Positions 21,785-63,300 of a DNA stretch of 64,000 nt are shown one piece after another. The notes below the pieces were generated by a model. That model was not told the DNA's origin and made no database searches. It saw nothing but the letters and a program-made list of their open reading frames with translations. Position 1 is the first letter of the stretch; each line of letters begins with the position of its first letter. This DNA comes from Trichoplax adhaerens (taxonomy: Eukaryota; Animalia; Placozoa): the NCBI RefSeq assembly GCF_000150275.1, contig NW_002060947.1, positions 3,526,980 to 3,590,979 of the forward strand, read 5' to 3'. A program made the translations under genes and the position numbers.

Positions 21785-22296
21785 ACACGTTGTGGCTTAG
21801 TATGGATTATGCCACTACTATTAAAAGACCGTGATTACAGTCATTCATAGACCTCTCAGAAACGATCGTACCGTACAGTATTATTGCCCATTTATCTACA
21901 GTACTAATCAGGTACACGTTGCGACTTAGTACTGTACTGTATGGATTACGCCACCACTAAAAGACCGTGATTACAGTCATTCATGGACCTCTCAGAAACG
22001 ATCGTACAGTACAAGTGTACAGTACAGTACAGTACTGTACTGTACTAATCAGGTACAGTACACGTTGCGACTTAGTATGAATTAGCCACCACTAATAAAA
22101 GACCGTGATTGCAGTCATTCAGGGACCTCTCAGAAACGATCATACAGTACAGTACTGTACACTCACAATGCACAGTACTTTATACTGTAGACAACGTACT
22201 GTACAGTGTACTGTACTGTACAGTACACTACATTTACTGTATATTATTATTTATTAATACACTGTATTATTGCCCATTTATCTGTACTAATCAGGT
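21785..22296 (+). repeat. Three direct copies of a ~130 bp unit immediately upstream of RARS1, differentially interrupted by CAGTA/CTGTA insertions
   Basis: Copies start at ~21785, 21914 and 22060; shared core acacgttg..cttagta..gcca.cacta..aaagaccgtgatt.cagtcattca..gacctctcagaaacgatc..gtactaatcaggta. Confidence 0.9.
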
Positions 22297-23544
22297 ACCT
22301 GATAAATCATGATGATAATGCGTACAGTACTGAACACTAACGTACTACAACTAGAAGTAGAACCGTAATACAGTAGGTCACAATCTATTATACTGTGTAC
22401 AGTACATCGATTGAGAATCCTTTCTCTGTGTAGCAGCATCTCTCTCTCTCTAATGAACCTTGAACCTGACGGACTTAGAGTAATAAAGTTCTCCTCTCTG
22501 AAACAGCTTTCTCTCGTCTCAGTCTAGAACTAGAGACATACTGTAGCTTAGCAGCAGTTTATAGCTAATTTGGATGCGAATAGTGGACAGTATTGTACAC
22601 TTAAATGTACAGTACAGTACAGGAGAGTGTACCGCTGCCAACATACAGTACAGTATTCAAACTTGATGTTTCAACATCTCAAACCATGGCTTTTACTTAC
22701 TAGAATTCATACACAAAATTTGGGCAATTCTATCAACATTTTATTCCGTAGCTCAAGTTTTAGATATCAACGAGCGACGGCAAAGTTAGCCGTGAATTTT
22801 TAACTCTAAATAAATAAATTCCATCGCGCGTATTCCAGCCATACATCATCCCTACCTCAGCAACGGTAATCTGCGATTACAGTAAATTGCAGATAGTTTT
22901 CAGACGACGCGGTAAACATGACGTAAAACATGCAGATAATGCGCTCCATCATGAACTGCTAAGATCTTTCAGTAATCTACGTTGTCTCAACTCCATAATT
23001 CATGTAATCAAGTGATCGAACCCGAGATTTATGTAAAACTGCCGCTGTAGGAAAATTCCTTTGTATAGTAATAACTTATTTATTGAGATCTTGGTCTATC
23101 ATGACCCTTGTTAGTTTAATAATTATAATTATATACGTGTATAATTATCGTTGCTAGACAAAATACTCGTTCAATGGAACGATAAACTCGGCATTACAAC
23201 TGCTTTTAACCCTATATGATTTAAATAAACTTGCATTGCTGATAATTAATAAAGAAAATTAATGTGCTAAATTACTGCAGTACTCGTTTATATATACAAA
23301 TTTACTCTTACATACAGTACAGGTATAGTGATTACAATATAAATAATAAATAATGATAACTAGGCCATCAGAGCTTCTCTATTTTAGTTATTGTTAATAG
23401 CGCTACATAACTGGTATAAGGTAGTAAGGTAACAGTCTCTCATACGAGGATGTATATGAGCGCATACGATAGCAATGACTCAGGCTAGTTACAGCTGAAA
23501 TCGCAGTTAAATATTAAACCATTAATCAGATATTCTATCTTTTG

Positions 23545-26500
23545 TTAGAATAAATTCAGAGTAACATTGGCCAAACTATTATGATGAATTGTATGACCAT
23601 TGAAAGCCAGAACTAAACGATAAATAGTCACACTTGTTCCAGTGATACCACATAAGCAGCCCAAAATGATAATAATAATGTCTTTCAAGATCATCCATTT
23701 GGAAACAGGAGGACAATACGAATAATGTGTTCCAATCTCGATCAAAGCAGGGAAAACCAGGCACGCCATGCTGCCCAAAAAAGCTCCAATTAATGAAATA
23801 AATAAACCAAGCTTAGGAACTGCAATCGCTAGAGCAGCTAATTAGATTGATATAACCACGTTAATATCATTGATACATATTAAATTATCACTCTCGTATC
23901 TCGTACAGCACACTGTACTGCTGCTATAAGAGCTACTACTGTGCTTATGCTTAAGATCCTAAAATTAATAAAAACTAAGAACTACACTATTTACCTGTTA
24001 CTATGACCATTATAGTTCGATATGCTAGATCAATTGATCCTTTTTTGATCTCACCAGCCTCAGCTAATGCATTACGTGACAAGTGTGTCAAAACCAGGTT
24101 CGCTGGGACGTAAAATTGCAGCAAATATGAGAGGAAGATGCTTATAGCATACAGACCACGAACACTTAGATATAGACTGAAATAAGCGGATAAATAAAAT
24201 CATCAGATCCCTTTTGAGCAGTTATTTCGCAATGTGGGATTTACATTTGTTTGATAATTTGTCTTGGGAGTTGAAATGTATAATAAACACTATAGCAAAG
24301 CTAACAGGGAATAGAGTTAATATATTTAGAATAATTATACTAAAAGATCTAAGGCGATAAACAAACATAACACCAAAGTAGGAGTTGAATGCCATTCTGA
24401 GTTTAATAACAATTTTGGAAAAATGAAAAATATAGACTTATCAAAATTTTAGTCGGATGAAATACCGTATTATGTAATTCACTTACGGTGTTTTTGGTAA
24501 ATTAAGTGTAATGCTACCCAGACTATAAGAGCCGTAACGAAGATAACCCCCAACAGCCATCAACATGTAGCAGATTGTAATAAAAGTCTGTGCTGCCCAT
24601 AAAACTTTACTAAAATTCTTAGGCTTTTTCATCCTATTTTCTAGTGGAAGAACCTACAACAGAAGCAGTTATGTCTATAAACTCATAAAGTGACTCCATA
24701 TTTATTACTAATTACGACAATCTACAACGAAATGTCTACTAAAGGGCTAGAATAATAAAAATCATAGTTCTATCCACTATAAAAAGATATTACTCACAGC
24801 ACATATGCCTTCAAAAGCAAAAATGATACTTCCAAACGATAGGGGAATAGCATCAAGTGATGCAATTAGTGGTAGCTTTTCTATATGATGAATGCCTTGA
24901 AATATATACTGGTAAATAATGATTAAACCAGTAACCAAGCAAATATTTGCGAAAAATGACATGTAAGACAGGATGTCCAGTGAGCGGATGTAACTGAAAA
25001 CTATAAGGGGAGGCACCAGTAGCAGCATCCATATTTTTACATCAAAATGACCAACTAACTATTATATAAAGAATAGAGCGATTTAAAATTGAATGCCTCC
25101 CGCACATACACCAAGTCACTTACTAACACATGTACTAAAGAGATCACATATAGGTAAACTACATTGAAATATCACATGGTAACATAAATCAATGAGATTT
25201 TTACAGAGTCAAATGTTGTTACATAAAATTTTTATTTACCTGCTTAAGATTTTCAGCCATAAAGAGTATATATGTTGCGCAAAAGCCATACTGCATCATC
25301 CAAATTACACAATTGACAAATTTTCTATCATTTGCGGACGTTTTCAAAATAGAAATTATAAGTTTAAAACTTTTCAAGTACAGTCCTACTTTCAAACCGT
25401 AGTCACAAATAATTTTTAAAGCATTTTCCTTTTGGCGTATAATAAAACAGCCTAAATATTAATAAATTTAAACGCGATACCTATTTATAAAAAAATGATC
25501 TAGTCTACAAATTAATTATTATAATACAGCTTGACTGTTCGTGCGTTTAACTTTTGACGCAAGCTTACTGGATTATTTTAAAGTATTTTGCACAGTAATT
25601 TACTCTCACAATGATTTTAACATTAAACACCTCTAGAAAGCCTTGACTCATTAACTCATCCGGAATGATTTTATGATAACTGATATAAGATACCGCAGTA
25701 AATAAAAAATTACTACAAAAAGGTTAAACTAGAATCATAGTGTTGTGTACTTTACCAGTAGCGCACTTTATCAACTCTATAATCATTTTGCTATGTAATG
25801 CATTCCAACACTCTTAACTAAAAAAGCCATAAGCCTACTTTGTCTTGAAAAATCTATATTTCTTTATACTATGGACTGTTTACAAGAATTATCTCAACGC
25901 AGTTAACAAATTATTGTAATGTAGTATAGTATAATGTAATACATGGTAATCGACTGTTTAACGACAGCATGTTACCTTATAGAATGGATTTTATCATGCC
26001 AATATTTTAAACTAACCTAGCATAAAAAGATTTCTTTGGAAAAATTTTAATAATGCTAAATTCAGCAGTTTTTCCGTAATCAACAGATGGTGCCTTAACA
26101 CTAAATAGGAAAAACGACCGTTTCATAAGTTTAGTTGATATCATCAAAGGCACACTACCGCTTATGTAAATGTATGATTGTTATTATTATAAACCGTTAG
26201 TAAGATTTAAAATGATAAATTAGATAATATTTACTACACTCATATATATTCTTTGAAATACAGTAATACGACTGTATTTATGAAGGAGCATGTTTAGATA
26301 AATGTTCGATATAAGACTTACTTTTTGCTGATGATTTGACTACTTGTAACCAACATATGCATACAATGAGTGGATAAGACAGCCATAAACAAAAGGAGAA
26401 TTGGTCCAAACTAGAAAAGCGGAAATACAGTACTGTAAGTAATATGGATACAGTGCATACGCTATACTGTATAGTGTACAATATCTGCAGTATTGTTCAT

Positions 26501-27658
26501 TGTATTAATTTCCCATCACACAGGTTTACAGCGTAGTGGTCAATCGTAGTGTGTTGCTTAATGATAAATTATAAATCAGGCGACTATACACTGTATACAG
26601 TAATGAAGATAAAGTATAAAATTCTTGCAATCAAGATCGTAATGACAAGTGTAGAGAAAGCACAGTACAAGAACGCACCATATCAATTTACAGTGTACAG
26701 TATTACGGACATAAAAAGGAGAAAAATCAAAATAGTTATACGAATATACCGTATAGCGATATGCTTTCAAGGGATTTTCATTCTATCATATAACTAACTA
26801 CAACAGTATGCTATGCTATTCGAAAATCTGACATTTGTCAAAAAGTTGTAAATCACAAATTTACAGCGAGTACTGCGGTCTAAGGTAATGTTCTGTACTG
26901 TACGTATGAGTATACAGTACTTACCAATAACCCGGAGTTTTTCATAGCAAACGGAAGACCCAATATACCGGTTCCGAGATTGACTTTTACTAAAGTCATA
27001 AATCCTTCCCAATCTCTAATTATATTAGGATTAAAATATGGCAATTACAGTCAGGTAATTTTTAATATTGTGTTGTTACAGTGCTATTAAGATAGTTACT
27101 ATTATAATAATTACATCATATAATGTATGGGAAAACAATACTTTTACAGTAACGGAAAGTGAGATCTTTTTTAATGGACAATAATTTCGTATGAAGGAAA
27201 CATATAATGCAGCGCAATCATTTCATCTTTTCAAAATTAAAAATGCTATTTCACATCAAAGATATATGGTGTATGGAACGAAGAGAAAATCAGTTCTAGC
27301 GTACTAATTTTGAAGGGTAATAAGAAAAATATTATAGCCAATTCCAATTTAAAACCGAGACTGTCAAGTGGTAAACGTAAAGTAGAGAGAGCTAGTGTAA
27401 AAACGGCGGTGTTTCGTATCAAGCTTTAATATTTTAACTTTTCTTTGATTTTATATACTGTACACTGTACAGTACTCGTATATCGACGAAACAATAAAAT
27501 AGACATACTGACCTTAATAATTTGCCTTCATGAACGGTGTCAGTTCGTTCGTCTTCCGGCAGTAATTCTTCGCATTCTTCAGAGTTGATCTCTGAACCAT
27601 ATCCAACGTTATCCACTGGGTTTAATAAAGGTTTACCTAACTTGTTATCATCATTCAT
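23545..27658 (-). CDS. SLC36 / proton-coupled amino acid transporter (PAT), tandem copy A, 9 exons
   Basis: Exons encode LVKVNLGTGILGLPFAMKNSGLLFGP, HCMHMLV, DYGKTAE, QYGFCATYILFMAENLKQ, SFFANI, FGSIIFAFEGICAVLPLENRMKKP, GYLRYG..GSITLNLP, SYLLQFYVP, AIAVPKLGLFISLIGA, LVFPALIE; all in phase. Confidence 0.9.
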
Positions 27659-30643
27659 TTCGATAGTATCGAATGCCTTGCTAATACGTGTACAAGCACC
27701 ATTAAATGATATGTGAACAAATACCAATTTATTACTTCAAACCGCGAAGTTTCGACTGCAAATTTTATCGCTAAAATTGAAGATGCGGGTTACACCCGTA
27801 TTCTCACGATTAAACTAAGAATTTGAAGCCAAAAACTGTAAAGCAGCAGTGTAAAATGCTAATGAGATACAGTCCATAGATTTAACGATCACGATCATTA
27901 AACATAAACCAGAAGCGGATAAAATCCCTAAACTGCATCTAATCCACTTTAATTAATATCACTGTGTTATATATGGTGATACAATACAATATCTGTAATA
28001 TGATTGATTGAAACTTGTGACATGTGACCCACAGCTAGTAAGATGTCGCGTATTGTGGTATCCAAGATGATTGATAGCTTGTCCTCCTTTTTAAACTTTC
28101 ATTTGCGAAATCGAATCAGTTTATGAACCTAGCAGTAATACTTGATGCAGCATGTTTATGATCGCAAACATAGAGGATTATTAACTCTATTCCAGTACTG
28201 GGAGACTATGATAATAAAGTGTAGGTAATAGCAAGATTAATTTACTGGTTAATAGACGCACGTAGTAAATTTAGTTTACGGACGATGCCAAAGGCCACCC
28301 CTTGATGAGTGATAAATATCTATAAATAATTTAATTTAATTTAATACTCAGGAGACCCTAAATTAGAGTCGCTAGTAGAAAAGGCTTATAGTTGGCCCAT
28401 ACATGGACTACAAGAAATATTTGTAGTCTATGGTCCACGGTAAGGTACTGTAATCTATCCAGATCTTTTACACAGCATGGTCAGCGTGGTATATAGAGTA
28501 CCGTTACAACCAGTCAATAACGAACTAACGCTACTCACTGGTAATACTGTCAACAAAGACAATAAGCAGACAGCGTACACGCCCAAAATATCAGTTTGCG
28601 AACTGTGATTGTATTTACTGAAAAATAAATGGCAATCAACGATGTAGTACATCGTAATTCTTGAGCTAATACGGACAGGAAAATAGAAAGTTGTATGTGT
28701 CGTTGTTATGTATTATATTGTGACACTAGGTCAATAATACTTGACAGAGTTAAACACGTTAAAGTAGCTTTAAACACAAAATCACTTTATTCTCGATTGC
28801 CTTCCCATAAATTACTTATGATAAGTATACTGCATCAGAGTCATATGCATAACAAGTCTTATACATAACATACGTGGTTAAAAATTAGCGTGAAAATATC
28901 AAAGCTGGCTGCATCTACCTGTATTCATTTTAAGGTTTTGATTGAAAACCTACTTTTATGCGTGTGTCACCTACAATTTGGAATTCAAATCTAACGTAAA
29001 GTGTACTAGCACAATATGCTATCACTTCGCTGACAGAGACGTTGGTACTTTGTACAGTATGCAGTTTTATATAGCAGCTAAGGTAGATAATCAAGTTAGA
29101 TAATCGATACAGGATAGCAGAAGAGGTAATAAATTAGTTAAGCGTAGTAATATCCGCAGTTATAACGTAAACTACCCCGTTAATTTAATATATTTTATCA
29201 GATCTAAATTTATGCAACGTACACGATCGTATTAGATACTATAGAACATAACGTAAAAAATAAAATAGCTAGTATCGCATACTCACACAAATCGCTACTG
29301 CATAGTATATAAGTTTACAGTAATATATAACAACCAGGATCAGAAAACATTTCTTTGTATTTTTACCAAAATTTTTTGGTAGCCTTGTAATTACGAGTAA
29401 TGATTTTATGCTAAATACAGTACTAATCTTTAAGTCAATTGTGAATTTTGCGCCGGCATCACCGTGCTGCTTCTCATTTTTATATTACCAACAATAAAGT
29501 CGAAAGCATCTTAAATGAGAAAAGGAAAATCTTCCATTCTGCTTAATAAGCTATTCGCATATGAAAGCAAGAACTTTTACATGTAAAAAGTCCGCGATTA
29601 CATATTAAATCACTTAAAACTACACACTCTTATGTCAGATATACGACTAATGTTATTTTATATGATGTAATGTATTAGTAATTGTCATATCTAATGACAC
29701 GTATTTTACTAGCGTGGAGAAGATATGTTATTGTAATGTTCAACTCATTAAATTACACATTAATACAATATTACAACAGATTATACTGTGATTATATCGC
29801 TGCTACTACAGCTTATCACCATTATTAGATTATTTCTAGTTTAAACTAGGCGCTGAAAGATAATATTACATTAAATAACCGTTATCAAATACTTTGAGAG
29901 TTAACCCTAATTCACATAACTTATAATTATATTAAAATTAAATTATTGCCAATTCATGAATCACGATACAAATTTTCAGTGAATTATTTAATGATGGTAA
30001 ACAGTTGTTTTTATGAAAGAATTATCTGCAAAAAGCAATGATAAAAATACGCGTACGGGAATATAGGTGCAACGGATTAAAGGTGAGAATACGCATAGTA
30101 GTAATGGGCAGTAGGAACTCCAAAAGATACTATAGGAGCTAGTTTACATTATAAGTGAAGATCACTGCACGTAGTGCGAGAGAGGTGAGAAACAGAAAAC
30201 ACGCTATGGTATAAGCGTATATAAAGAGCTACTAAGATCTTCTAGTAGCCTATGGCTGTGTATATATTTATTCAACCAAGTAACCTACCAATCCGCAAAA
30301 TAGACTTAATAGAGTGACAAAATTACCTTTTAACATTCACTTAGAATTGCATAAATAGAGAGTAATAATATGCTCGTAAATAGATAATTCCAACATTATC
30401 CGTATATACAGCAAAGAAAAAGAGTTAAAATCATAAATAGTGAATACTAGGCCGTCAGTATTACCTCATTTTTGCCATTATTAATTACAGCAATCAGAAA
30501 GTACTCTATATAATAGATTGTACAATAACAGTATCTCATACAAAGATGCATATAGAATCGAAACGATCTGTATACTGCTGTCGCCATAGTCGCAGTTAAA
30601 TATTAAACCTTCAATCAGAAATTATATCTTGGTTATCAGAGTT

Positions 30644-38800: not shown

Positions 38801-39026
38801 TAATACTGTAATTGTATAGGTGATATAGTGGTCTAAGTACATCAATTGATTCACATTACATCATCGCTCATATTAAGTTGAAAGTAGAGAATTTAATTTA
38901 CGATATCTACATTCGTTTTTGTACAGCTGGGTGGTCGCGATGTCACGAAAGAAAAGAATAATCCAGAGTGACTGCCTAAAATAGTAATACTTTAATAAAA
39001 AATTACTAGCACTTGCTCCTACACGA

Positions 39027-42000
39027 TTAACGCTTCTCAGGTTTTAAGGTTGGAGGTTTGAAAGCCGTCTTTTGATACTTTTCTTTATGTTTACTAACTC
39101 CTCCAGTTTTAAAATTCCTCCAATTATCAACTCTGTTCGTTCGAGATTTCTAAATATGCAATAAAGAGGAATTACAGTTACTATATGAAGAAAATCTATC
39201 AGCGTAGGGATGCAGTAAAATTTCGTTAGATAACTCAACGCTGGCAATTCATCTATACTATTTTCTTGTTTATACCGTATTTATGTAATAGTATAATCTT
39301 GAATTCATACATAGTTCACGCTATAATTGTTTATCGGTTGATACATAAATACGATAGGATATAGATATACAGTCAGTTACCTCCCAAGCATCTTTGAACT
39401 TTGCCTCCTTCTTTTTTCTTTCTTCTTCTACTATTTCTTCGTTCCTTTGACGCTTTCTACAAAGAGATTAAATTAACTAAACGTGCATCTATAAAAGATA
39501 ACTTTGAAACATCTAATGCATATAAACAGGTAGTGCGCAATGATATCTTTAATAGATAAACTATTCCGATTTTAAGAGCTCCAAATTGATGTTTTTAAAT
39601 TACTTTTCTTCGGTTTCTCTCCTTTCTAATTGCTTTCTTCTTAATTCGTAGTCGGCAAACAATTTAACTGTAGTGTTACGAACGAATTTCTTCATCTAGA
39701 TATGTAAAAGAATTACTCCAATTTAATTTTAAAATAGCATACAATCTTGGCTAAATTTTCATATCTTTCTTCCGATATCAAACGTTGTTACCAATTCAGG
39801 GTCTTTATCTTCCTCTATAGGTAAGTTGCCTAACTTTTTCGCCTCCTTACGCTTATCAGATAACTAAAACAGCATGATAATGTGGTGGGTGAAAGGTGAT
39901 CAGTATTGCTACTTAATATATATATACTAAAAATCTAAAATTGTATTTCTATCGCACAAATACATGTTCAGAATTGCATTATATCGTATGAATATGATAG
40001 GCATATGATTTTTACTTTTTTACTGGATAGGGCCTTGGCATCTTCTATAATTTGCAATATTTTCTTAGTTTCATCTTCATCTTCCAATAATTTATAAGCT
40101 TTACTAATAGCTATCAGGAAATAAATAACGTATCAATACATTGTATAGCTAACGAATCATTGTATGCTCGCATATTCATTTTGGCTAAAAATTAGGTCGA
40201 AAGACATTTTCATCATAAATAAGCATAATTGATAGTAACTGTTATATGTTGCAGATACAGTCAAAAATACTAGCACGGACTATCCTAATAATTATTTTAG
40301 GTTTCAACTCCGAAATTGATAAAATTTTTAGCTTGCCGAGACTACTGGCCTGCTGCAGTTTTAACAGCCATGTTACTAGGAAACTGGTAGGGATTATTGA
40401 ATGACTTTTAAGAAATTGCCGAAATGTTTTCAAATCATTGGCTAAATTAACAAGAGTCTACTACTCATACAGTGTAATATTAATCATCTTGTGCTTAATC
40501 AAGTACCGTAGTATCCCTAGAAATACACAAGCACATGCAAAATTCTGCTGTATGAATAATGTAGGGTTATTTACATTTACTCATTTAGATTACACACATT
40601 AAGATCTCACCATCAAACGCTTTACGAGCTGATTCTTCTCGTTCTAGATTCTTGTCAGGATGTACCAGTATAGAGAGCTAATAAGAGAATAGGATTTTCC
40701 AAAATGATTACAATCGAATTAGCGTTGGTATGCGTCCATTGTACAGTATGGTGACAAATCGTATATAAAGAACATTTGTAAAATTAAGATGGGTACATGA
40801 ACGCGATTTAAACTCTTTGTTACTGTAAAGTAAAATAAACTTTGTAGGAGGTAGTGTTATTATCATAATCAATTTATTACCGTTCGATATTTTTTCTTCA
40901 GTTCGGTTTTATCGGCTGAAGGATCAGCTTGCAATACCTGAAAATGTGTAAAATAAAGATAAGATTTCAACTTGATGGAATACGTTATCAAAGACGATAT
41001 AGATTGCATATTGTAGTGCAATAGTAAGACACTACATCGGTGTCCAAAAAGTTCAAGCCGCAATTTTGTACACTGTATTTTGAAGTTGAGTAGTTGAAGC
41101 GGATTTAAAAATGATAACGTGCTGGCTTATAGACAGTATTATTGTCTTTATCAAATGCTGTATTCCAACATATTATCATAATACAGTAGTGGCAAAGGAC
41201 GTAGAAATGATAGTACGCAGCACTAACTAGTTGAAAGCAGTGTGTTTGTCGCTAGCTATCTGGTGAATTAGACCATATCATGACGCATAATCAACGTTAA
41301 TTATAATCCGAGTTAGCAGTGTATCATGTACATGTATATCAAGACTTTAGCTAAGCTTCCGATAATAATCAAATCATTAAAACTTTGAAAGTAAGATAAC
41401 CCTACAGTATCTTGCACAATATTGTTTGAGGTAAGCTGAATTTTGTGAATAAGGTTTTAATGGTAGTATTGTACGCTTGAACATGATTAGCAATAACTCA
41501 CTACAAAGGTGAAGGACAGTAAATTTTTTATATTATAAGATTAAGTACATATACATCCTATTTGCCGATGAACTAATGATTTGTATTGTTGATGAGTCAG
41601 TTGAAAGGAGAAGACTGCATGTAAGAGCCCTGGTAAGAATGTAAAGTACATGTCGACATGATCAAATGTAAGGATTTCCAAAATAGCGAGTGATTTTTTT
41701 GGATATGTTGTACACGTACATATATTGTATAGTCAAGGTAATGATCTAGGTATTTTACAGTTACAGTACAATACAATGATGAAAAATGATGATACGGCTA
41801 AGTTACAAACCTCGAAAGGGTTTAGATTAAGATAACTGGATCCAGGTTTAGTGAGGCGTTGAATTTGTTGCTCACTTGTTAGTACGGAATCGCGTTTTTC
41901 AATAGCTTTGACCTAAAATGGAATGGTAATGACAGAATTGGGTAGATTGAGCTTTGAGCCCTTTTCACCAGGCAACGAAAATACGAGTATGCCCATCGAT

Positions 42001-42093
42001 GATTATGCAATCGTTTGGGAGAGATATTACCTCTGTCAGGAAATTCTTGAAACTATCATCTGGTGGATTTTGATTCGTTCCGCCACTTGCCAT
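39027..42093 (-). CDS. DNAJC8: DnaJ homolog subfamily C member 8
   Basis: MASGG..FKNFLTE|VKAIEKRDSVLTSEQQIQRLTKPGSSYLNLNPFE|VLQ..|LSILVHPDKN (HPD motif)..SRTNRVDNWRNF..AFKPPTLKPEKR*; colinear with DNAJC8. Confidence 0.92.
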
Positions 42094-42234: not shown

Positions 42235-42560
42235 CTGTATACTGTAGCTGTCCTCGTACCGTACACTGTACTGTGTACGGTACGTACAGTACAGTACTGT
42301 GGCGGCTACAGTACGGTACGACGGATGGAAAACTGGGGTGACATTTTCAATTGAAAAGACTGTACAGTGTACAGTACTGTATTGTACAGTATACTGTACA
42401 CTATACACTGTACTATATTGTCATTCAATGTACTGTACAGTACACTGTACTGTACAATAGTCAATACGCTACTTTACAGTACCGAGTACTGTGAACTGTA
42501 CAGGGTACTGTAAGTATTATACTGTAAAGTCGCTCAGTTATACTGTATTTGTAAGGCACT
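42235..42560. repeat. Mixed TA-CAG/CTG/CCG/CGG-TA array upstream of DNAJC8
   Basis: e.g. cgTAccgTAcactgTActgtgTAcggTAcgTAcagTAcagTActgt and ctgTAcagtgTAcagTActgTAttgTAcagTATActgTA. Confidence 0.85.
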
Positions 42561-42754
42561 GAAATATACTGTACATACTCTCGTTGTGCAACAAACCTCA
42601 AATTAAGAACTGTATCTCTAAAAAAGGACTACTCTACAGTACTGCATGTCTGCATACAGTAATCAGGATTAATCATGAAAACAAAGAAAACCTCTAGGGA
42701 TATTTTCTTTCTTTTACCTCGATGGGAAAAACCCAGTTCACCTTTCAATTTTTA

Positions 42755-43318
42755 ACTGAGGCACTAACTGAGATACAGTACTGAAAGCAACAGAGATTGT
42801 TTTCCTTCACTCAGGCACTAACTGAAATACCGTACTGAAAGCAACAGAGATTGTTGTTTTGGTTCGCTGAGGCGCTTACTGAAATACAGTACGGAAAGCA
42901 ACAGAGATTGCTTTCCTTCGCTTGGGCACTTACTGAAATACAGTACTGAAAGCAACAGAGATTGTTGTTTTGGTTCGCTGAGGCACTTACTGAATACACT
43001 ACTGAAAGTAACAGAGACTGTTGTTTTGGTTCGCTGAGGCACTTACTGAGGTACAGTACTGAAAGCAACAGAGATTGTTGTTTTGGTTCACTGAGGCACT
43101 TACTGAGATACAGTACTGAAAGCAACTGAGATTGTCGTTTTGGTTCACTAAGGCACTAACTGAAATACAGTACTGAAAGCAACAGAGATTGTGCTTTTCG
43201 CTCACTAAGGCACTAATTGAAATACAGTACTGAAAGCAACTGAGATTGTGCTTTTCGCTCACTAAGGCACTAATTGAAATACAGTACTGAAAGTAACAGA
43301 GATAGTTTTCGTTCGCTT
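42755..43318 (+). repeat. Minisatellite, 10 tandem copies of a 54-57 bp unit
   Basis: Consensus ggcacttactgaaatacagtactgaaagcaacagagattgttgttttggttcgctga; unit starts at about 42760, 42814, 42871, 42925, 42982, 43038, 43095, 43152, 43209, 43266. Confidence 0.95.
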
Positions 43319-45455: not shown

Positions 45456-48400
45456 ATGGCGGGTGGTGGTAATAATCGTCAACGCTTTTCAACAACGACC
45501 TCAATTGCTGAATATTTGAAACAGTTACTAAGGGATAAACACAATGTCTCTACTTGTGCTCCAAACACATTCCTTCACTGCGAACGCCTTCTCAATGAGG
45601 GTAAGTTTACTAAATTAAAAGTATTAATCAAAATTTCACTGCATCTTCTATCCTTGTACAGTAATCCGCTAAATTCTATTGTTACAAATCTACCCGCCAT
45701 CAATCGTTGGAGATAATTGATAACAGAATTATTGCGACCTTTGCTAGTAAAAGTTAATTTTTCCCATGATTAAAAGCTAAATGAATATTTCAAATTAAGT
45801 TACCAACATCTTAGCACTTTCTTTCATCGCTATAATTATCGTTATTATCAATAGAATAAGATAATGAATAGAATATTTGTATATAATTATTGGATGTTTT
45901 GTTTCAACTTAGTCCAAAATTCTGTCAACTATTAACACCATTTTTATCCATCGTAATCTCTTCATGAACAGTAAAATATTACTTGAAGCCATCATAATAA
46001 TATTGGCTATAGATCTAAGTGCATTATCTAACTTGTATGCTATCAGACTGATTTATCCTTATTATTATTTGTTGTCCATCATTTTTTTTTGGACAAGTGG
46101 GTAAGTGATTAATGAAATTTAGCAATTGCTTTGTTTCTAGATTCATTAACAATGTTAAGATAAGTTGATTAACCCGACTATCAGTCTCCATGAACAAATA
46201 TCAGTTCGTATTTAAGTCATGACATGCCCGATAGAATATAGAATACCTATCTCTTTCCTATTGCTCTTTTTAAATAACGATCGCGTATTCTAAAATAAAT
46301 CCGAATCCCCCTCCCTCTCAGAAAACGATGAGATCAAATTAAAATGAGTTGCATATTAAACTTGACAATTATATTTCTGTCAAGTACGTAATGGTCAAAA
46401 ATTATGATAATTATAAGTAGCCGTACAGAAAATCGATCAAGTCTAGACGATACTCAAGTAGAAGCCATTTCATCCTTAAAGGCTATTATAGAATTTACAA
46501 CCGAAGCAACATAACTATTATTGTCATACGTAATTCGTTGATGAAAAGTAATGTACCGTAGTATCGCTTTGCCATTTGCCATATACAGTATTTAGCATTG
46601 AGTACTCGGTATAAAAACAGCTTAAAATAGTGCTCGCATCGTTCATTCCATCTCAGGGATGAAGCTAGGGTAGTAGCATTTTAGTCATATTTATCTGCCG
46701 CTTATTTAGTATTATTACTTGCTACAAAGGATATTAGAAAAGGTATTATTATATATTATCGAAAGGATTCGCTAGAGTAAATTCTTTAATTACCTTGTGT
46801 TGAGTACTCGTACCAAAAAATAATTTTATGCAAAAAATGTAAGAAAAAGAGATAATAGTTGCATACACTTGGGCATAATATGTATTCATACAAATTTATT
46901 GTACGTTAATCCTACACAATGTTAGTACTATAATTTAAAGAATATTAAATCAATTTCGTCTCACCGTTATTACCGCAATCTGGTTGCAAATGACCCAACT
47001 AAAGAGAATAATAAAGTTACAGTTTCCTAAAGTAAAGTAATTGGCATTTTATCAATTGCTTGTCTGGTTACTAATCAATAGCGATAGTTAGTACTGTATT
47101 CCCATAAATTGAATTATAAACCACATTGTATAAACCAGCTTATGATTCCAATAAATCAGTTTAGCATCAGTCGATGCATAACAACAAGTCGCTCATTTAC
47201 CTTCAATTTATTACACTAGTCTTCGATTATCTATTTCCATGTTTTGCATAGGATGCAACAGCTAAGGCTACCACGATACAACGTCGTTGATGTTGTATGA
47301 CATGCGTTAATAATTTCCAATTTCCATCATTTATCATTATTTTATTTCAATGGTTATTTTAAGCGCAATAGTTACACTAGTTCCTTTGTAGATATAATAG
47401 CGTAGGTGATGATGTTGAATGATTGTACTGATTTTGGGCTATAAATCTACCAGTAAGCAAACCTATCCTGATCAATATAAAGGAGGTTTTTAATTCTATA
47501 TAATCTTAAATTTTGTGTTACTAAATTAGAAAGTCAACAATACTTATATACTTAGAATCGAATCGACAAAGTCTAAATAACTTTGTAAATCTCAATTTTT
47601 CATTAATTTAAAATACTTGAACAGTCAGAAATGCAGTTGCTAATGAAGGCGCTATTCAATAAATGGAATAATAGCAAGATTTTTAACGTAAATTATTATA
47701 TTTGATCGTATGAGTGTGCAAAATTTTAAATTAGTAGATATTGATCAAGCCTATACAAAAATCCTATAAAAAATTGATCGTTACTGTATTAATAAATTAT
47801 ATTATCTTTCTAACTACTGTAATTACTAGAGTTACATAATGCAAAGCTTAAAGTTTGATTCTGTAACATAACAACATGCTACAAGTTAGTGTACGATCGA
47901 TTTCATTATAATCATGTTATCACATCAAGATCGATAATTTGTCGCTATATTAATCTATGGAGTGACATCTCACTAATGAATAAGCCATTAATTAGAAATA
48001 AAATACAAACTGCAAGTTGAAATAATAACTTTTCTTGCTTACTTTACTTTACGATGTTTAGTAATGATGGCGCATTGTTGCTAGTTGTATCATTCTACCT
48101 TTGCATATAAGTATGCGTAGGGAGTATTGATATTGGCTATCCTTATCATAATGGACAATAAACAGACTGATGCAATTTTTCTTTCAATTATTGTAATAAT
48201 TAACATGTTATGATTAATTTTTAATTAAAATTCATAGATTGCTCAAACATATTCACAAACATTAATTTTATTAATTTGCCGTGAAATAACTGTATCGTTA
48301 GCACCATAGCTTAGATCGATACTTTAAGCTATAAATTAAAATATGATATACATATTTTAATTCTAAATTGGCAATCAGATTACAGATCATTCTGTGGTCA

Positions 48401-51588: not shown

Positions 51589-54500
51589 TTAACTGATTGA
51601 GCTTCCCGCGAGACTTTGCACTCTAACCGGTCCCTTTTCAGTCTTGAAAACGTGGTTACTGTCTTTATAGACAGCAGTCAGGTCATCAGAAATTTTTAAA
51701 TCGGCCTATTGGAAGATGATACAGCATATATTGTTAATACATAATCTAAAAATGCTGACTTTGTAACGAATTTAAATTATTTGTATTAGCTTCAAAACTA
51801 CAATAAACAAACCAGGATAGTTTCTAGTAATTTCTTTTTAGGATTGATTTCTTTATCCGGTTCTATCAGGATAAAATCCATTATTAATACCAATAACCCT
51901 ATTTTAGAAAGGTGTTACTCAATCTTAACAAGGCTGTCAAACCTCCACACGTGTCATGCTCAAACCCAGAGGTAAATATCTTTTCTCCAGGTTCACAGCT
52001 GGAAGGAGGATCAAGTGGCTCAATTGTTTTCGGATCTCCACTATAAGAACGAAATAACGGATAAATTTACAACTTATATTAGTATTCGGTAAGCCTTCTC
52101 ATTACTGGTAAAAATTTAAGTAAAATAAATTGTAGGTTATTTTGATGTAAAACGTTCTAAAAGTAGTAGTGTTCCTTACAGAGCATCTATTTCTTACAGA
52201 GTAATAGATGCTGCTTTGGAAGCCAGCAATTGGTAATACTTACCTAGATGCAGCAAGCATCATTCCTTCCGAAACTACTCCTATAATATCAGATAGAAAA
52301 AACGATTACATGATTAATACTGGAGGCCACTAAACAATCGGTCACCAAATTGCAATTTCGAAAAATATCTACCGCGAATATTTTGAGGCTTTAGATTACA
52401 TAATAAAGCTACTTTTCTCTTCTCCAGTTTTTCTACTGGGACATAATTAACCAGGCCACTGACGATAGTACGGTTTTCTACAACAAAAATCATGGAATAA
52501 AGATAGTTGTCCATGATTGATAAGGTATAAATTAATATGAAGACATTGAATTCATCAAAGATGGAAAGCTTCATACATGATTTACCTCCTGAACCAATAT
52601 CCACTTCTTGAACATATAAGGAATCTGCATTAGGATGCTAAAGAAAGCCGCGAAAGTCAAGAGATACATACATTGATCGCTTTTGTTAGTGTTAAATTAA
52701 ATTTTAGATAAACGCCTATAGCAATTGACAGACCTTTTTAACTGATACAATCTGGCCAACTCTGACATCCAGTCTTGATGGATCAGCAGCACGATTTGCT
52801 TTTTGTGAATCACTTTTCATTTTATCCACTGTAATAATGCATGAAGATATTTTTGTAACTAAATTATATCAGCGGAAGCTAGTTACATCTAGAATTCTAC
52901 GAATATTGCGTACATTTAACAGTCTCCGGGTAGGCTAGGTGTTTTAATTTAGTAAATTCAGGATTGTCGAGTTCTTGTCGAATAGGATCAAGGAGCTAAG
53001 TATGCAATATATCGTTTACTTAAGGAAGGCTACATCATCAATTTACTCCAACAATCTTGCTTTCTTATTTAGTCAATTCCATTAAGTGCTACGCAGTGAA
53101 TGAAGCTGAATGTACTATTTATATTTTATACCTGATTTAATGCATCCGCTACTGCCTGTTTAAGATCTGCCGGGTAAAGTTCCTATAACGGCCATATAAA
53201 AAAGTGTGCATTATAATACTATAAAACATAGTAATTATACGTTATTTTGTCAGCAGTAGCTTAAATAGTCAATTTTAAATTCATTTTTTGCTTACATTCT
53301 TAGCAAATGCGGCTTCCAGGTCCTCATAATTTGTATAAACTACGCGCCCACCATATTTTTTGTCCCGATTAACAACAAATTCTGCATAATGAAATGGCAG
53401 GGAATTAATAGTTTATAGCTTTTCCAAAAAAATTTTCTTTAATTTTTATCTAAATACATATGCTGTACGTGCAAGAAATGTATCTCATTCTATTTGGAAC
53501 TTTACCTTCAGTTTTCGATAACGGCAGCAACACATATTTAACAAAGGATAATACCCCATTCTCCTTAATATTGCCAGGTTCGCAGAAGGCCTATACAAAA
53601 CCAATACATGAAGTTAAATCCTCTATATACCAAATATCATATCAAGTTTAAGCTAAAACTAAAAAAAATTGCTTTACTTTACGAAGTTTCTTCTCAACAA
53701 CTTCTTTAGAATCAATTAAATCAATCTTAGAGTCCTAAAATAAGAGTGTATGTAGAATGCTTAGTATCGAAATAAACTTATCACCGTTTAGACTATAAAT
53801 TTTTTAAATAATTTTTAAGGGTTGCTAAACCTCTACAGATGAACTCATTTTTCCACCAGTAAGTCCTGGAACTATAGTCAAAGTAAAAATACGAATGCAA
53901 GTAAAATAACAGCAAAATGTGCAAATTTGGTACGCTACAATCAATACTCACTTCCGTGACAACTGATGCCAATCGATAGACATCCAAGGTATATTCCCTG
54001 ATATTGAAAATGAAACGTGCATAAGCTGAGTCAAACATTTAAAATTTTAAGCATTAAAATTAAGTAACTAAGCTTAACTTTGTAATTTACCTAGACAATT
54101 GGTAATCAGTCCCCCTAACAAACGTTAGTTTTTCTATTGAAACTCCAATAGATTGTAGCATAGCCTATAAGCATAATTGTTTTCGCCCATTATGTCACAA
54201 TATCATTATAAACATTTTACCATTAAATTCTCTACAATGAAATTTCAGATATGATCGTACTTTAATAACGAACGAGTAGTATTTCACACGTTGCGCAAGT
54301 AACTCCCACGGCGCTTTCATATTATCCAGGTAGCCATGTAAATCAGCAAATAATATGATGACCTAAGTAGTAGTAATAATCACAAAGTTCACTGGTTGTG
54401 TCTATCATTGAGCATAGTTGTTAAGATCTCATATTTTTACTACTGTAAGACCGTGCAGTATCATTAACTTTTATCTAATAATTATGAACAAGTAATCATA

Positions 54501-56141
54501 ACTGATCCCAGATGGAACGAGAACTACTTCTAGCCTTTTGTATGATTCTTACTTAATACGGTATAAGGTACTTCCAATTAAATTAATATATGAATATTAG
54601 AACAATTTGATACCGATTCGATTATTACGCATGATCTAACATTCCGTTTCTGTACAAGTTAATGGATAAGATATTTGAATAAAGGCTACTAAGAGTTGGC
54701 AAAGAAACTGCCAAGAGGCTAGTTTGACATGGTTAATAAACTGCTAGTAACTAACGAAATTTTAACAAAGTATAGTCTAGCCCAGACTATTTTAAGTTCA
54801 TTCGTGTATCATAAATTAACTAGGATAACCCAAAAGTTCTCATGTGCAGTACTAACATAAATAAAGGAAGAGCACTTCCTTTTGTAATTCATCGTTGTAT
54901 AGATAGATATTCTACGGTATATTATCTTACGTGGCATCCTGCCTTTAAGAAATCAGCAATTTTACTAATAGGAACAAAGTAGCCCACATGGGGACGGCCT
55001 GTGGTCGCAGTTCCCCAATACAGTGAGATATCCTTTTCCTTCAGAGTTTTCAAGAGTCTTTCTTCACCAATCACCTCCTAACAGATAAAATATGATATTA
55101 CATGGTAATATCTGCATCTACATTGTCATTGATACCCCAATAAATTAATTGGATACTATAGGTTATAAAATTTAGTTGCAATTAGCTCCTAGAAAAATCT
55201 TAACATATAGTAACTTTGAAATATTTTTGAATCGTGCGTCACTAAAACAATGATAGAATTCATTGATTAATTTAATTACAAAATTGTACAAATATACTGT
55301 TTGCCATGCAACACAAACTTGTTGCGCTACGAATTACAAGTATTTCAGTCATCAACAATGGCAAGGACACTCAACATTAGTGCATCTGAATCGGATCAAT
55401 ATAGATATTTTATGTGATGTAATAGCATTCATTATAATTACAGCTACAACATTCTACATATAGCTGCATTATCGACATTGGAAGCAACACATATCTATAA
55501 TATCAAGTAACAATATACAGTACGTCCTGTTTTATAATTATCAACAAATTGATCTCAACTGTACGTTGTAAGACAGGTATATTTTCAATACTTCATTACA
55601 ACCCTTGCTGTTAACTGAAATTACTGCACATTTTGAATTCTTTATTCGTTGTAATAAAATTCTAGAGTGAATGTAATAACACTACACATACTGGCTAGCT
55701 CACTGTGTTGCAAGCGGAATATCAGGACAATCCATCGTATTTTTGATACGTATTGCATGATCAAGTACGTAAAAATGGAATGCAGAGAAAGGATGAAAAA
55801 TGAAAAATTCCTATAGCAAAGTAATGACCAATCGAATTTTATTCTATTTCTTACACTGTTGTACTATATAGAATATAATCTATTTATGAAATCAACCACG
55901 AAGTAAATTTAAATTTATGTGGTCAGTCTCATATCCTCGGACACCATGATGCTCAAGTTGTAATCCTTGCTGATGATGCACCAACTTGAACTCCTTACAA
56001 ATCATACATACCACAGTAGTACACCATAGCATGACTGCGTGTTACATCATCGTTTAACTTATCCAATATTGATTATACCTGTAAGTTACGCGTAATCAAT
56101 TGAAATTTTCCTTCAGCGGACAAAGTAGAGCCCGATGCCAT
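51589..56141 (-). CDS. YARS1: Cytoplasmic tyrosyl-tRNA synthetase with C-terminal EMAP-II-like domain; as assembled it lacks ~72 central codons and is frameshifted
   Basis: [124 protein letters not shown]. The segment HD.KKAGAEVVKQ...HLMNPM is absent between 53952 and 53871. Confidence 0.88.
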
Positions 56142-56409: not shown

Positions 56410-56600
56410 GGTGTACAGTATACAGTATACACTGGGTGTGCACTGTGCGGTAAAAGCTGGGAGTTGACACTCTCGACTGGAGTACAGTACTGTACTGTAG
56501 CTACATGGACTAAAGTACTGTACTGGATGCCCTATGGCATCTACTGTACAAAGTACTGTAACTGATGGCTAATATACTGTATACAGTGCTGTAAGGACCT
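56410..56600. repeat. TA-CAG/CTG-TA array upstream of YARS1
   Basis: gTAcagTATAcagTATAcactg, agTAcagTActgTActgTAg, agTActgTActgg, TATActgTATAcagtg. Confidence 0.8.
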
Positions 56601-58354: not shown

Positions 58355-60606
58355 TTACAGTTTCTTCTTATTATTCTTCACACCATATAAACTACTTTTC
58401 TCCGACATTGTAAAATTACGCGCTATCAATCCACCTATAATAACTATAAATTAAAAATGCAATGTTATCAATCCTTTCTCTAAAATAGTTGAAACAACAT
58501 AGCGCAAATACTAACATTCAAATGATAAAACAATAAGAAACTCAATCGTTACACAATACTAAGATCAAAGATACTTACTCAATAAGGAAAATACACCAGA
58601 CGAGACTAATGCAACTCTAGATCCACTAATAATGGCAGGAATTAAATAAAATACTAACGAAACTAAAACAATTGTCCACCAAATTGTAGTTAATAGGAAA
58701 GTAGTACGGTTACGATGGGCGTAACACCTAGGCCAACCAACAGTGCCTTTTTGCAAATATTCATCCATCAATTGATCCTACAAGCATCATTCTTAATTAG
58801 ATACAACGATTATATGTATATTATGTTAAATCATTCAGGTATCATACCTTTGTCACGTATAATTCCCTTAAAAATTTTGTGCAAGCTTGTTCGTCATCTT
58901 CACCTCGTATCACAGAGATCGGAAGGCGCCTAAATTCAGGCAAAAAATAGTATTTAAGATCTTCATTACTTGAATTAACGAGGATCAAAACTAATATTTT
59001 TGTATCTGGACCAGTAGAAATGCTTTGATATCGTGTATCTAAGCGAGAATATAAAGGACGGTAGGTTCTTATACATAATTATAGTTACCTTACAAGAAGA
59101 ACTATTTTACAAGGTTTGCAGAACAACAAGTGCATTAGGCTAGGCAACGTATCGGGAAATATGAAAGTGGTATCGTAGATTGCATCACCTGGTGGTTTGG
59201 CAGCCAAATCGTAAAGAAATTTTTATGAATAATTCAATATATCTAAAGAATGATATACAGTTTTATATAATGGAGTTATTGCTAACATTTTTCCTTTAGA
59301 CAACTATATGCAAGTGTAAAGCCCTTAACACGAGGCTGCATGTGGTGTTTAAGAACTGGAAGGCCATTTTTTTTTGCAAATTCAACACTTTTTAGGTATT
59401 TTTCTTTCGTGTACCTTGTACCTTCTGCAAATATTGTTAACTTTAAAATAAAATTTACAATCAGACTAGCAACGTGGGAAAAGACGAGTAACACCAAGAT
59501 GATTTATAAATGCGGTAAATACTTATAGTATTACCCATAAAGGAAAAGGCCCTTCTTTCAAACTTTTTAACTGCCGTTCCAGAGATATAGAATCTTTAGC
59601 CCAGTCCCTCTTAACAAAGAGATGTTCTAAGTTCCAGAAAGAGAAACCGAGTAGGGGGACGTACTTTATTGCTGATTTCAAATAGCATTTTGTAGCCTTC
59701 AATTCAAATATATTTCAAATATGTTTCAAATGTAAGTATTTACCGTAATAAATAAATAGATGCTGATTTTTCATGTACTTCTTTCGAGTTATTGAGTGAA
59801 AAATGCAACTTTTTTCATTGCGTTTTAAACATTATAACATGTGAGACATGAAGAAATAGTACTTTCGTATGATAAATGTGCACGTGATAAAGTAAGGTTA
59901 TAGATTATAATATATTAATTATACTGTAAATCCGAATATTTACCGGCACCATATTAAACCTATCAGCGAACGTCAGGCCAATCAGCCAGTCAACATCGCT
60001 ACGATGATTTGCGACAATCAGTGCATTTTCCTTTCCGAAATATTTATCATCATCATTCGGGCAATAAACTTCCCATTCTAAGCCACTCCAGAATTCAGGC
60101 AATGCCGTTAAATCTATACAAATAAGTTATCATTTTTATTATAGAGCACAACATATGCGTTTTGTAGGTTGTAAAGAGATGCAACTCTTTGATATCGTAT
60201 GTGTATGTAGTCAATAGTTTATATAATCTGCAGTAAAAAATACTAGAACAGCACATAAGATAGACAACAGAAGGTACGATATTGTAGAGCTGTACATTCT
60301 TACATGATGCAGCACCATAACTCTTTCACTGCATGAATAGAGAAAATATAATTGATTCATCTGCAGTATAAAGTAATAGCATCACTGTATTAATGATTAC
60401 AATACTACTGTACATAAGATACTGTACTTACTTGCAAGCCATAGGCGACCTATTGCCATAGATACGTGTCTATAATATACTTTAGATATTGGCCAAAGAA
60501 CTAACGAAAGGATATGAAAAATGCATGCAAACGTTCCGCTAACAAAAAAGACGGTTGCATACAAGAACCAAGCCAATGGTGATTTCTTAAAAGCCGTAAG
60601 CGCCAT
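58355..60606 (-). CDS. 1-acyl-sn-glycerol-3-phosphate acyltransferase, AGPAT3/AGPAT4-like, 8 coding exons
   Basis: NHRSDVDW (NHx4D motif), KYVPLLG, LFVKRDWAKD, IFAEGTR, LPVLKHH.QPRVKGF, AIYDTT, C-terminal TM segments and a KKKL* ER-retrieval end. Confidence 0.9.
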
Positions 60607-62720
60607 TATTTCAATCCACTGAATCGGCACTGTGAAAAGCAATGAGTGTGCAAAATAAGTACATTTTATGTACGCCTGTAATAGAGATTTAATTGGTACT
60701 CGCCCCACTCTTGAATCATGATAACTCTCAGGACATACGAGTAACAGTAATGGAAAGCAGCTACATCAACAATCACGAACAAATCAAATGTCTATGTTTA
60801 ACTATGCAAATCACAAACCAAAATTAATTGTAACTCCATTTAAGCACTGATCCTTAAATAGCTTATAGTATCGTAGAACGAGCATCTAAAGTTACTTCAT
60901 TTCAAAATCAGCGAAATATCTGACTATCACAATTCAGTCACTCATGCAAAATGACATTATTCCTATAAACACAACTTAAGGGTATGCATACATAATTGCT
61001 GTAGATAGCACGATCAGCACGAAGTTAACAAAAGAAGACTCAAAGCCTAGCACATATGCTGTTTACTATCTGCCTTGATACATATACCCATACTGTACAG
61101 TTCTCAACATTATAACATGGTGCAATTTTAGTTGAAGAATCTGTTGTGCGCTGATTTTCGTTGTTTTATCTCACTCGTACTAATGAAGCTTACGCACAGT
61201 AGCGATGATTATCTTAACCTATCATACAGAGTACTTTTGCACCTGAGATGCAATTACCGCAGTTTAGCATGCAAATAAATAAATAAATACGTCAAATCAT
61301 AGTTGAAATGAGGCGTTGTACTATACACGTATGAGTGAGTATGGTGCAGACGGCAGTGTTTACTATTTAATGTTAAGGTTTTTCTCGCGTTGTAAAAGGC
61401 AGTTGCCCGATTGGACGCATCCGCAGGTAAATACCAGGCTTCTGAATACAGTAAGTAGTAGTGTCCTGCATTTGACTAAATGTTGATTCCAACATTTGCG
61501 CAGTCACGCCTCATGCATACGTTAAATCAAATAAATTAAATTAAAAAAAAAAATTAAATTTATTTTGCGATAGATTATAGAATATACATGTTAGACACTA
61601 AAGAATTACCATAGAGGTTTTACGTCCATGAATCAGTCGACTCAGAAAAAGTTCAAAAATATATTAGTACTTTGCGCATAACACATGCATGTCAATATTG
61701 AATGGTGTACTATTAATGGCATAGTTTAGCTCATAATGAATTGATGCAAAGATATACTGCTCTAGATCCAGTATGCACTATTGCAGATTTCACTATTAGC
61801 ACGTCGAGTAACCAATAATTCATATTATGCGACTCAGGCGAATTGCAATATTGTAACACTGTGAATAATGATCAAGCTAGCTTTCATATCGACGTTTGGG
61901 AAATAAAATTCGATGCATCCAATGTTTATTAAGGAATATAACACCATTGAGCAAATGCTTGCCAGCAAGTATACATCAACCGTTTCAAAGTGCTGTCGGT
62001 ATTGCTTTAAACTAAACTACAGCACTGTATTTATTTACAGTTGAATGCTAAACAAATAAATGTTCAGTCTTCTACAGCAGAATCGATCATTCTGCAATCG
62101 CGGTCCGGTCGATATTGAGCTAATTTATTCTATAGCAAAAGATTCTGCTTGATTGACTCCCACCCTGCTACCTATAACGATGGATAGATCAGTTATTCGA
62201 TAATGTGCGGTGCAATAGGAGTATAGTATTGCATTGCCTTTAGACACTTTGCCATATTGTTTTGAAGTACCTTACTGCTAGTGAAAAATTGTATGCGTAG
62301 GTGCAGTAAGTTAAAAATTGGTGAAAGCGTAGCAGCAGGGACTTTCTTAAACCATCAATATACAGTACAGTACAGTACTGTACTGTACAGGAGGATAAAG
62401 TGACCTCGATGCAAGTGTAGGTGTCGTGTAGTGTGATCAATGCTATTGCACTCGACATACTGTAATACAGTGCGACCACTGTCGTTAGCCTTTGTACTAC
62501 TGTATATTGGCATAGGAGGGTATATCTACAGTAGTAGTCCATAAAGGGACTAGCCAGATCCCCCAAAATAGTAAATTGCAGCGGATGCTATCAATATTAT
62601 CTGCACATGTGTTCATGTTCCTATTGCATTGATGTAGGCTATAAAAATCACTTTCTCAACGATGCCAATGCTTGTATATACAGATGACATCAATAACAAG
62701 AAGAAAGGATCTTAACTCAC

Positions 62721-62900
62721 CTCAAGTTGTGGATGTTACAGTAATCTTCAAACGCTCATCCAAACATGCAGACTTGCAAAATGTTAATCGCAATACTCGT
62801 GCATTCGCTTCCAGACAGTTGCAAGTGTTGAGCTTTTAAATCATCCGACCTCAGTTGATATACGATAGTTGTTGATATATACGTGACAGATACAGTACTG
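62721..62900 (-). other. Probable non-coding 5' exon of the AGPAT gene
   Basis: Consensus donor GAG|GTGAGT at 62720 on the - strand closing a GC-richer segment upstream of the AGPAT ATG; the 5' boundary is approximate. Confidence 0.35.
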
Positions 62901-63034
62901 TGATGCACCGTGTTGTGACTTGTGACCCCTCGTGACCTCTGAATCTGATTCACGCAGCAGAGTTCATGTACACTGATACGAGACTCTGAACCACATAGAG
63001 TACGTTGCTACAATGCACAGTACAATGTGGTAAT

Positions 63035-63300
63035 CTGTACTGTGCACTGTACACTGTACAGTTCTTTTATCAGTCCGCGCAGATGTCGACCAAAAGCTGC
63101 TGACGTGTGATTGATTGCTAGGCGAAGTACTGTACTGTACAGTACATTGTACAGTACATAGTCATTAACAGTACTGTACTGTACAGTGTACAGTACTGTA
63201 CGTACAGTATTAGAAAAGATACCGGTAATTTTTCGACTAGCCTATTAGGTTATACTGTACTGTACAGTCATATAATGAAACTACAGGAATTACTGTACAG
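63035..63300. repeat. TA-CAG/CTG-TA array at the probable AGPAT/divergent-gene promoter
   Basis: gTActgTActgTAcagTAcattgTAcagTAca..cagTActgTActgTAcagtgTAcagTActgTAcgTAcagTA (63128-63209); a smaller block lies at 62359-62389. Confidence 0.85.

Follow-up and report, generated by a model that had tools for sequence, protein, structure and literature searches.

The 64,000-nucleotide (nt) stretch of the Trichoplax adhaerens genome analyzed here (contig NW_002060947.1, positions 3,526,980 to 3,590,979; hereafter the window) contains four genes whose upstream regions carry dense arrays of the heptamers TACAGTA and TACTGTA. All four genes, RARS1, DNAJC8, YARS1 and an AGPAT-like gene, are encoded on the minus strand; the array fields themselves are assigned no strand. 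The first field (21868-22660), with 28 heptamers in mixed order and chains such as AAATT at 22018 (written by central base), is placed between the 3' end of an SLC36-like gene and the probable RARS1 exon 1 (21699-21744), in which an ATG at 21744 or 21732 is followed by a GT donor. An RNA contig touches this exon at 21727, and the downstream arginyl-tRNA synthetase (ArgRS) exons lie at 18799-20757 on the same strand. The second field (42235-42575), which includes ACCGT/ACGGT units at 42257-42320, precedes DNAJC8, with exon 1 at 42031-42093 (ATG at 42093) and exon 2 at 41811-41912, an exon structure with an orthologous counterpart in contig L025. The third (56410-56585), delimited by motif counts and density, precedes YARS1, with exon 1 at 56076-56141 (ATG at 56141, lower bound approximate), a HIGH-motif exon near 54999 and KMSSS near 53851. 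The fourth (62359-63302), which precedes the AGPAT-like gene (exons 59425-60765), is made up of one block at 62361-62387, another at 63050-63302 and units scattered over the interval. Fields begin approximately 125 nt upstream of the RARS1 start codon, 145 nt upstream of that of DNAJC8 and 270 nt upstream of that of YARS1. The promoter focus and the gene assignments made in the initial annotation hold, with strands now added.

Enrichment was measured against dinucleotide expectation in a 264-kb sample comprising the window and 200 kb of the same contig, and genome-wide unit counts were made on an assembly of 105,631,681 bp in 1414 contigs. In what follows W denotes A or T, and S denotes C or G, at the heptamer center (TACWGTA, TACSGTA). 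The window contains 165 TACWGTA (91 TACAGTA and 74 TACTGTA), where dinucleotide-preserving shuffles yield 16.3 +/- 3.8 and none of 100 reaches the observed number; the dense piles reported in the initial annotation are therefore real. Slightly more than half of these heptamers (89 of 165, 54%) fall inside the four fields, which amount to 3.4 kb or 5.3% of the window. Their density is 22-41/kb in the fields and 1.25/kb in the rest of the window, compared with 0.23/kb by chance, so that the window outside the fields still holds about five times the chance density. In the 264-kb sample the two forms are approximately equal (228 TACAGTA and 214 TACTGTA) and are enriched 7.7x and 7.4x individually and 7.5x together. 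TACSGTA (TACCGTA/TACGGTA) is enriched 3.9x, and all remaining TA-NNN-TA classes are at or below 1.8x. The rarer spacers that had been listed beside CAG and CTG fared unevenly: CAGTG/CACTG, which form the 9-mer variant TACAGTGTA, are enriched 8.8x, CAC/GTG are at chance level (1.1x), and CCG/CGG, despite their 3.9x enrichment, are about as frequent as decay of W units predicts.

The array unit was shown to be a GTAC core, itself a palindrome, that recurs every 5 bp; A and T alternate at the unit center in an order close to random. Spacing between GTAC cores is dominated by period 5 (52 cases at 5 nt, 14 at 7 nt, few others), and the letter between cores spaced by 5 nt is A in 26 cases, T in 21, C in three and G in two. 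Tandem Repeats Finder (TRF) also reports the arrays, the longest chains of which hold five units. Since GTAC is its own reverse complement, inverting a unit changes nothing but its single central base. The arrays fold into hairpins better than shuffled sequence (z -2.3 to -4.4), a capacity that they have because unit orientation is mixed and that may be relevant to their function.

These arrays are almost certainly the (ACAGT)n/(ACTGT)n promoter repeat of Trichoplax, the dominant simple repeat of its genome, and the feature is already known, having been published in 2010. In that survey, pentanucleotides made up 62% of all microsatellites and ACAGT 78% of the pentanucleotide repeats; ACAGT repeats were found upstream of genes, 54% within 1 kb and 85% within 5 kb, and the genes associated with them were enriched for translation (Wang et al., 2010, Biol Direct 5:18, PMC2871265). 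Organism, unit, upstream position and the translation or housekeeping bias all coincide, identifying the two as the same feature. The published survey counted perfect repeats of one orientation, whereas the arrays described here are GTAC-W units in nearly random orientation, and isolated heptamers, the apparent balance of birth and decay, and multi-unit polymorphism go without mention in it (PMC2871265). What is new here is the anatomy of the unit, its orientation statistics, the flanks of isolated heptamers, the match to decay and a 10-bp insertion at a naive TA.

Genome-wide, pairs of neighboring units within GTAC-W-GTAC-W-GTAC comprise 4851 AA, 5064 TT, 3495 AT and 3225 TA. These 14-mers divide into 9,915 of the same orientation (59.6%) and 6,720 switched (40.4%), and reversed controls number 0-3. 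Triples (AAA 1250, TTT 1349, AAT 795, ATT 818) demonstrate that the chain is first-order: the next unit has the same orientation with a probability of 0.58 when one unit precedes it and 0.61 when two like units do. Classical slippage of a one-orientation repeat is excluded by the 40.4% switches and by a probability of like orientation that hardly changes with run length, and the initial annotation was right that simple slippage fails. If adjacencies are a mixture of slippage and an orientation-blind process, approximately 81% of them must be orientation-blind. Point mutation from A to T at the unit center was likewise rejected as the source of the switches; chains hold nine S-containing pairs against 23 flips, though two thirds of central changes give S. 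Copies of a 57-bp minisatellite in the window, described below, contain no A/T flips. Copying of several units at once by fold-back, or quasi-palindrome correction, is unsupported in the same counts, as AATT (193) is no more frequent than AAAT (212) or ATTT (234).

Of 441 heptamers in the 264-kb sample, 229 stand alone, with the nearest further unit more than 40 nt away. The sequence beside them is near background (G at -1 in 26% and C at +7 in 28%, versus 19% around TA generally), and no array signal was found at -3 to -5 of the isolated heptamers in this sample. The possibility that they are shrunken or decayed arrays is excluded by this lack of array signal; isolated heptamers arose as TA-CWG-TA. 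Non-central one-mismatch neighbors of the heptamer exceed expectation by 448 copies and the parent heptamers by 384, and the S-type excess is 61, where decay of W units at the central base would give approximately 50. By this pattern, perfect units would seem to arise all the time and then decay neutrally, rather than being sites under purifying selection.

This bears directly on the view that the arrays are homotypic clusters of a palindromic TAC-N-GTA site for a transcription factor or architectural protein, made mainly by point mutation and kept by selection, in which the A/T mixture would be two views of one symmetric site. The site is indeed palindromic and tolerant at its central base (W 7.5x, S 3.9x), the arrays focus on housekeeping promoters both in the window and in the published survey (PMC2871265), and the repeat has been linked to insulation (PMC12817080). 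Nevertheless, strict 5-bp head-to-tail phasing, together with length differences between copies and haplotypes, shows insertional growth; sites under selection would not be so numerous as the some 1.5 units/kb seen genome-wide, introns included; the frequency of one-mismatch variants is that expected of neutral decay; and in the 57-bp repeat the motif has changed no less than the sequence around it. We consider selection on point-mutated sites quite improbable as the origin of the arrays.

Insertional growth was examined in haplotypes and in local paralogues. For the former, contigs from one sequencing run carrying the same species label and from two runs carrying a sister label were aligned over 21500-27499. 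Inside the array, the haplotypes differ by +15 nt, +10 nt (units A,T) and -5 nt, while indels elsewhere in the compared 6 kb are of 1-3 nt each. The 15-nt difference, with an adjoining single-nucleotide polymorphism (SNP), yields units C,T,T,A,A in place of C,A. Strings matching the inserted ones are found 110-340 nt away in the same promoter. The same-species-label run and a sister-label run share three SNPs and a TG insertion that are absent from the reference (21795-21816, 21568), and the haplotypes are therefore common to both labels. The assemblies of these runs break at the arrays (21900-22300 and 27300-27500), where thousands of contigs per run pile up, and the "joints" reported there are repeat artefacts; short-read assemblies will misjoin or truncate promoters that carry arrays.

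The paralogues are supplied by a local 136-bp tandem repeat of 2.9 copies (21785-22179, plus strand), whose copies carry arrays of unequal length. Copy 2 has gained 10 nt (CTGTA-CTGTA) at a TA that is still naive in the other two copies, and it also has an additional 5 nt (GTACA) where copy 1 has GGTACACG. The 136-bp unit was considered as a dispersed element and rejected, as it occurs only here in the genome. Across haplotypes and paralogues, three of five length differences are multi-unit (10, 10 and 15 nt) and two are single 5-nt steps. The initial annotation had anticipated a peak of 5-bp insertions at TA sites lacking prior repeats: the 10-bp insertion agrees with that expectation in its naive TA site, and the prevalence of 10-15 nt differences, whose polarity is known for the paralogues, departs from it.

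The initial annotation had read the arrays as piles of footprints left by excision of Tc1/mariner-type elements that repeatedly insert at TA. The most developed form of this explanation is that an element with CAG...CTG ends, possibly one of low copy number that was very mobile and is now extinct, seeded TA sites in accessible promoters, with slippage following later. Canonical footprints of Sleeping Beauty are TACAGTA and TACTGTA (PMC6943129), and the heptamers match these letter for letter, as the annotation had said. Like the footprints of Sleeping Beauty and other Tc1 elements, the units occur in both forms at about 1:1, are bounded by TA and are independent of the neighboring unit (PMC6943129). 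Near-random orientation with approximately 81% orientation-blind adjacencies, isolated units in background flanks, insertion at a naive TA in copy 2 of the 136-bp repeat, and a pattern of neutral decay that suggests a mutational rather than a selected origin all accord with excision. So does adjacency within fields, which is compatible with random targeting of TA: simulated random hits gave 6.7, 4.6, 2.8 and 4.7 adjacent pairs per field against 11, 3, 2 and 9 observed, with field limits that had been set after the motifs were seen and so favor the match. Since simulated and observed adjacency are similar, stacking needs no special targeting, and the proposal that the system amplifies itself by creating new TA targets is not needed. 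Nor do the numbers count against excision. Extrapolation gives a genome total of approximately 1.5e5 units, and by a rough estimate some 10 copies hopping at about 1e-3 per generation could write about 1.5e5 footprints within approximately 7% neutral divergence.

Against excision stands, first, the missing source. In the published survey, transposable elements account for 0.13% of the T. adhaerens genome and none is active; 11 degenerate Tc1/mariner fragments, likewise inactive, were reported, and no transposon expressed sequence tags were found (PMC2871265). Our Pfam search of the genome returned one DDE_3 locus and three pogo-like DDE_1 frames, so that four intact single-copy Tc1/pogo-like frames were found, a point in favor of a transposase. 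The DDE_3 locus is an intact single-copy frame of 358 aa resembling Tc1 transposases, with HTH_28 and DDE_3 domains (L021:895-1971, corresponding to G000 C1409:3537595-3538671). Its product is 100% identical to TrispH2_008830 of Trichoplax sp. H2, and relatives with 53-54% identity occur on short contigs from elsewhere; the gene is possibly a domesticated transposase. Its flanks, the one set of ends that was read, contain no CAG ends and no convincing inverted repeats, the sole pair being a weak one of 16 nt that does not start with CAG. The pogo-like DDE_1 matches, at G000 C1396:1272742-1273251, C1373:146174-146725 and C1411:7363514-7363975, lie within open frames of 550, 419 and 426 aa without stops. 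A mariner-type profile had no match in the genome, and its control matched nowhere either. In the 264-kb sample, pairs of TA-CAG...CTG-TA termini bearing 14-nt inverted repeats are about as frequent as chance predicts if those derived from arrays are disregarded; eight candidates with at most one GTAC core per 14-nt end were found, most of them array-like, where a rough estimate of chance is two to three. A source family with TA duplications and CAG...CTG termini, for which the annotation had recommended a search, was thus not found by the genome-wide profile search, at the ends of the DDE_3 locus or in the 264-kb scan.

Second, most of the observed steps (+15, +10 and +10) are of 10-15 nt, and the enriched variant TACAGTGTA is not a canonical footprint. 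Units stacked in phase by the thousand at promoters also set the arrays apart from Sleeping Beauty footprints. To our knowledge, Tc1/mariner elements have no preference for promoters. The multi-unit steps weaken an origin by excision without refuting it, as the haplotype differences may be deletions. Because what a footprint predicts for the sequence is what is observed, seeding by a transposon stays a live minority reading, though an unlikely one. Somewhat less probable is the broader proposal that a TA-targeted, transposase-derived process, either a low-copy mobile Tc1/pogo element or one of the four intact transposase-like genes, writes CWGTA into accessible promoters, so that the arrays would be a record of accessibility in germline or stem cells that was later co-opted as architectural sites.

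Mobile elements of another kind have been associated with the same class of promoters. Loop anchors in the hubs of placozoan housekeeping (GP1) promoters are described as having a motif similar to the terminal inverted repeat of Mutator elements (Kim et al., 2025, PMC12221973). In a 2026 study (Chimaera), insulation in Micro-C maps of T. adhaerens is connected with two repeating motifs, ACGG and ACAGT, of which ACGG is assigned to the transposable element of Kim et al. (PMC12817080). As far as these descriptions go, the published motifs and our arrays share genome, promoter class and GTAC frame, and ACAGT itself is linked to insulation; the loop-anchor motif is of the ACGG type by its description, with which, rather than with its logo, the W-type arrays of the window were compared (PMC12221973, PMC12817080).

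The arrays might accordingly be remnants of the termini of Mutator-like inverted repeats or miniature elements with ends built of GTAC-N. Inverted repeats carrying the loop-anchor motif are described at housekeeping promoters (PMC12221973), and that motif is called a repeating ACGG (PMC12817080). The genome contains four loci with MULE domains, and inverted arrays of ACCGT (left) and ACGGT (right), about 330 nt apart and flanked by ACAGT, are present at L014:6440-6890 (G000 C1410:1036440-1036890), in addition to the ACCGT/ACGGT units of the DNAJC8 field; the arrangement at L014 may underlie the annotation of terminal inverted repeats of Mutator at such promoters. In the window, however, the unique sequence between arrays is local and belongs to no dispersed family. 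W units far outnumber S units, and the frequency of S fits decay of W. Mixed arrays would moreover score as inverted repeats in detection software, so the Mutator annotation may be circular. Of the origins considered, Mutator-like termini appear the least probable, and we regard them as very unlikely.

Neither slippage alone nor selection on point mutations alone explains the arrays, and an orientation-blind insertional process is needed. At roughly even confidence, we favor an endogenous one, in which orientation-blind repair builds a repeat with a self-complementary core, and constitutive promoters retain this repeat for an architectural role. Such arrays would be strand-symmetric and hypermutable, growing and shrinking by blocks of 5n bp as the cell replicates and repairs its DNA. 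Candidate routes are slippage between GTAC cores, exchange among nearby arrays, and microhomology-primed copying in which one or the other strand of an array already present serves as template at breaks in TA. Excision of transposons would be unnecessary; new perfect units would be born steadily and decay by point mutation. Quasi-palindrome template switching and templated insertion by polymerase theta insert short nearby copies in either orientation with a few bases of microhomology. Array growth would share with them this microhomology-based copying in either orientation, although neither is known to spread one pentamer genome-wide, and fold-back copying leads one to expect a palindrome excess, which the Trichoplax arrays lack.

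Several observations weigh against endogenous repair. We know of no documented endogenous process that places CWGTA at naive TA genome-wide. Copying with strand switches should leave an excess of palindromes, and none was found in the genome-wide counts of AATT, AAAT and ATTT. Isolated heptamers in background flanks, and near-random orientation of units, are what one would expect of excision footprints. The haplotype indels could all be deletions between GTAC cores, which also softens the case against footprints. Finally, a contig with the DNAJC8 orthologue (L025/L026, Logan SRR18067462, 10.8 kb; exon 2 76% identical) contains two TACWGTA and no upstream arrays; it comes from another species and is non-syntenic, and the comparison is uninformative. 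The DNAJC8 promoter of L026 has a 10-nt GGTTTTTCC-type repeat in place of arrays.

Endogenous repair would account for how the arrays arise, and their persistence may lie in what they do at promoters. From the literature discussed above, we infer that arrays would help to keep housekeeping promoters open or to insulate them, probably by offering many binding sites at once to a putative factor that recognizes the symmetric TAC-N-GTA. Other promoter tracts serve as cis-elements, such as (GA)n in Drosophila, to which GAGA factor binds, and the poly(dA:dT) tracts of yeast. These are likewise simple repeats at constitutive promoters, plausibly nucleosome-free or insulated; unlike them, the Trichoplax unit is 5 bp long with a palindromic core.

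In one of the simplest animals, thousands of housekeeping promoters bear these arrays, which recent work connects with insulation of the genome in three dimensions. Where the arrays come from has counted as a puzzle since 2010, and the present statistics narrow it. If a transposase were responsible, a mobile element would have shaped promoters by leaving them rather than by inserting, of which few cases are known. Whether the cell's own repair or a transposase builds them is now testable with existing placozoan genomes.

Other features of the window are as follows. RNA contigs cover 22719-25269, at the 3' end of the SLC36-like gene (23548-27736, minus strand), with two introns spliced out; the gene carries a looser scatter of 11 units at 26259-27474 in its introns and 5' part. 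A minor cluster of five W units and one S unit was delimited by motif counts at 11013-11441. QKI starts at 45456 on the plus strand and has just four units in the 2 kb upstream. Between DNAJC8 and QKI lies the 57-bp minisatellite (42755-43307, plus strand; 9.8 copies, 88% identity), which has one TACAGTAC per unit, with point variants (TACCGTA and TACACTA) in two units. GAGAGAG, enriched 6.9x in the 264-kb sample, is a second simple repeat enriched where the arrays are; a CT/GA run is found at 22438-22452, inside the RARS1 promoter field.

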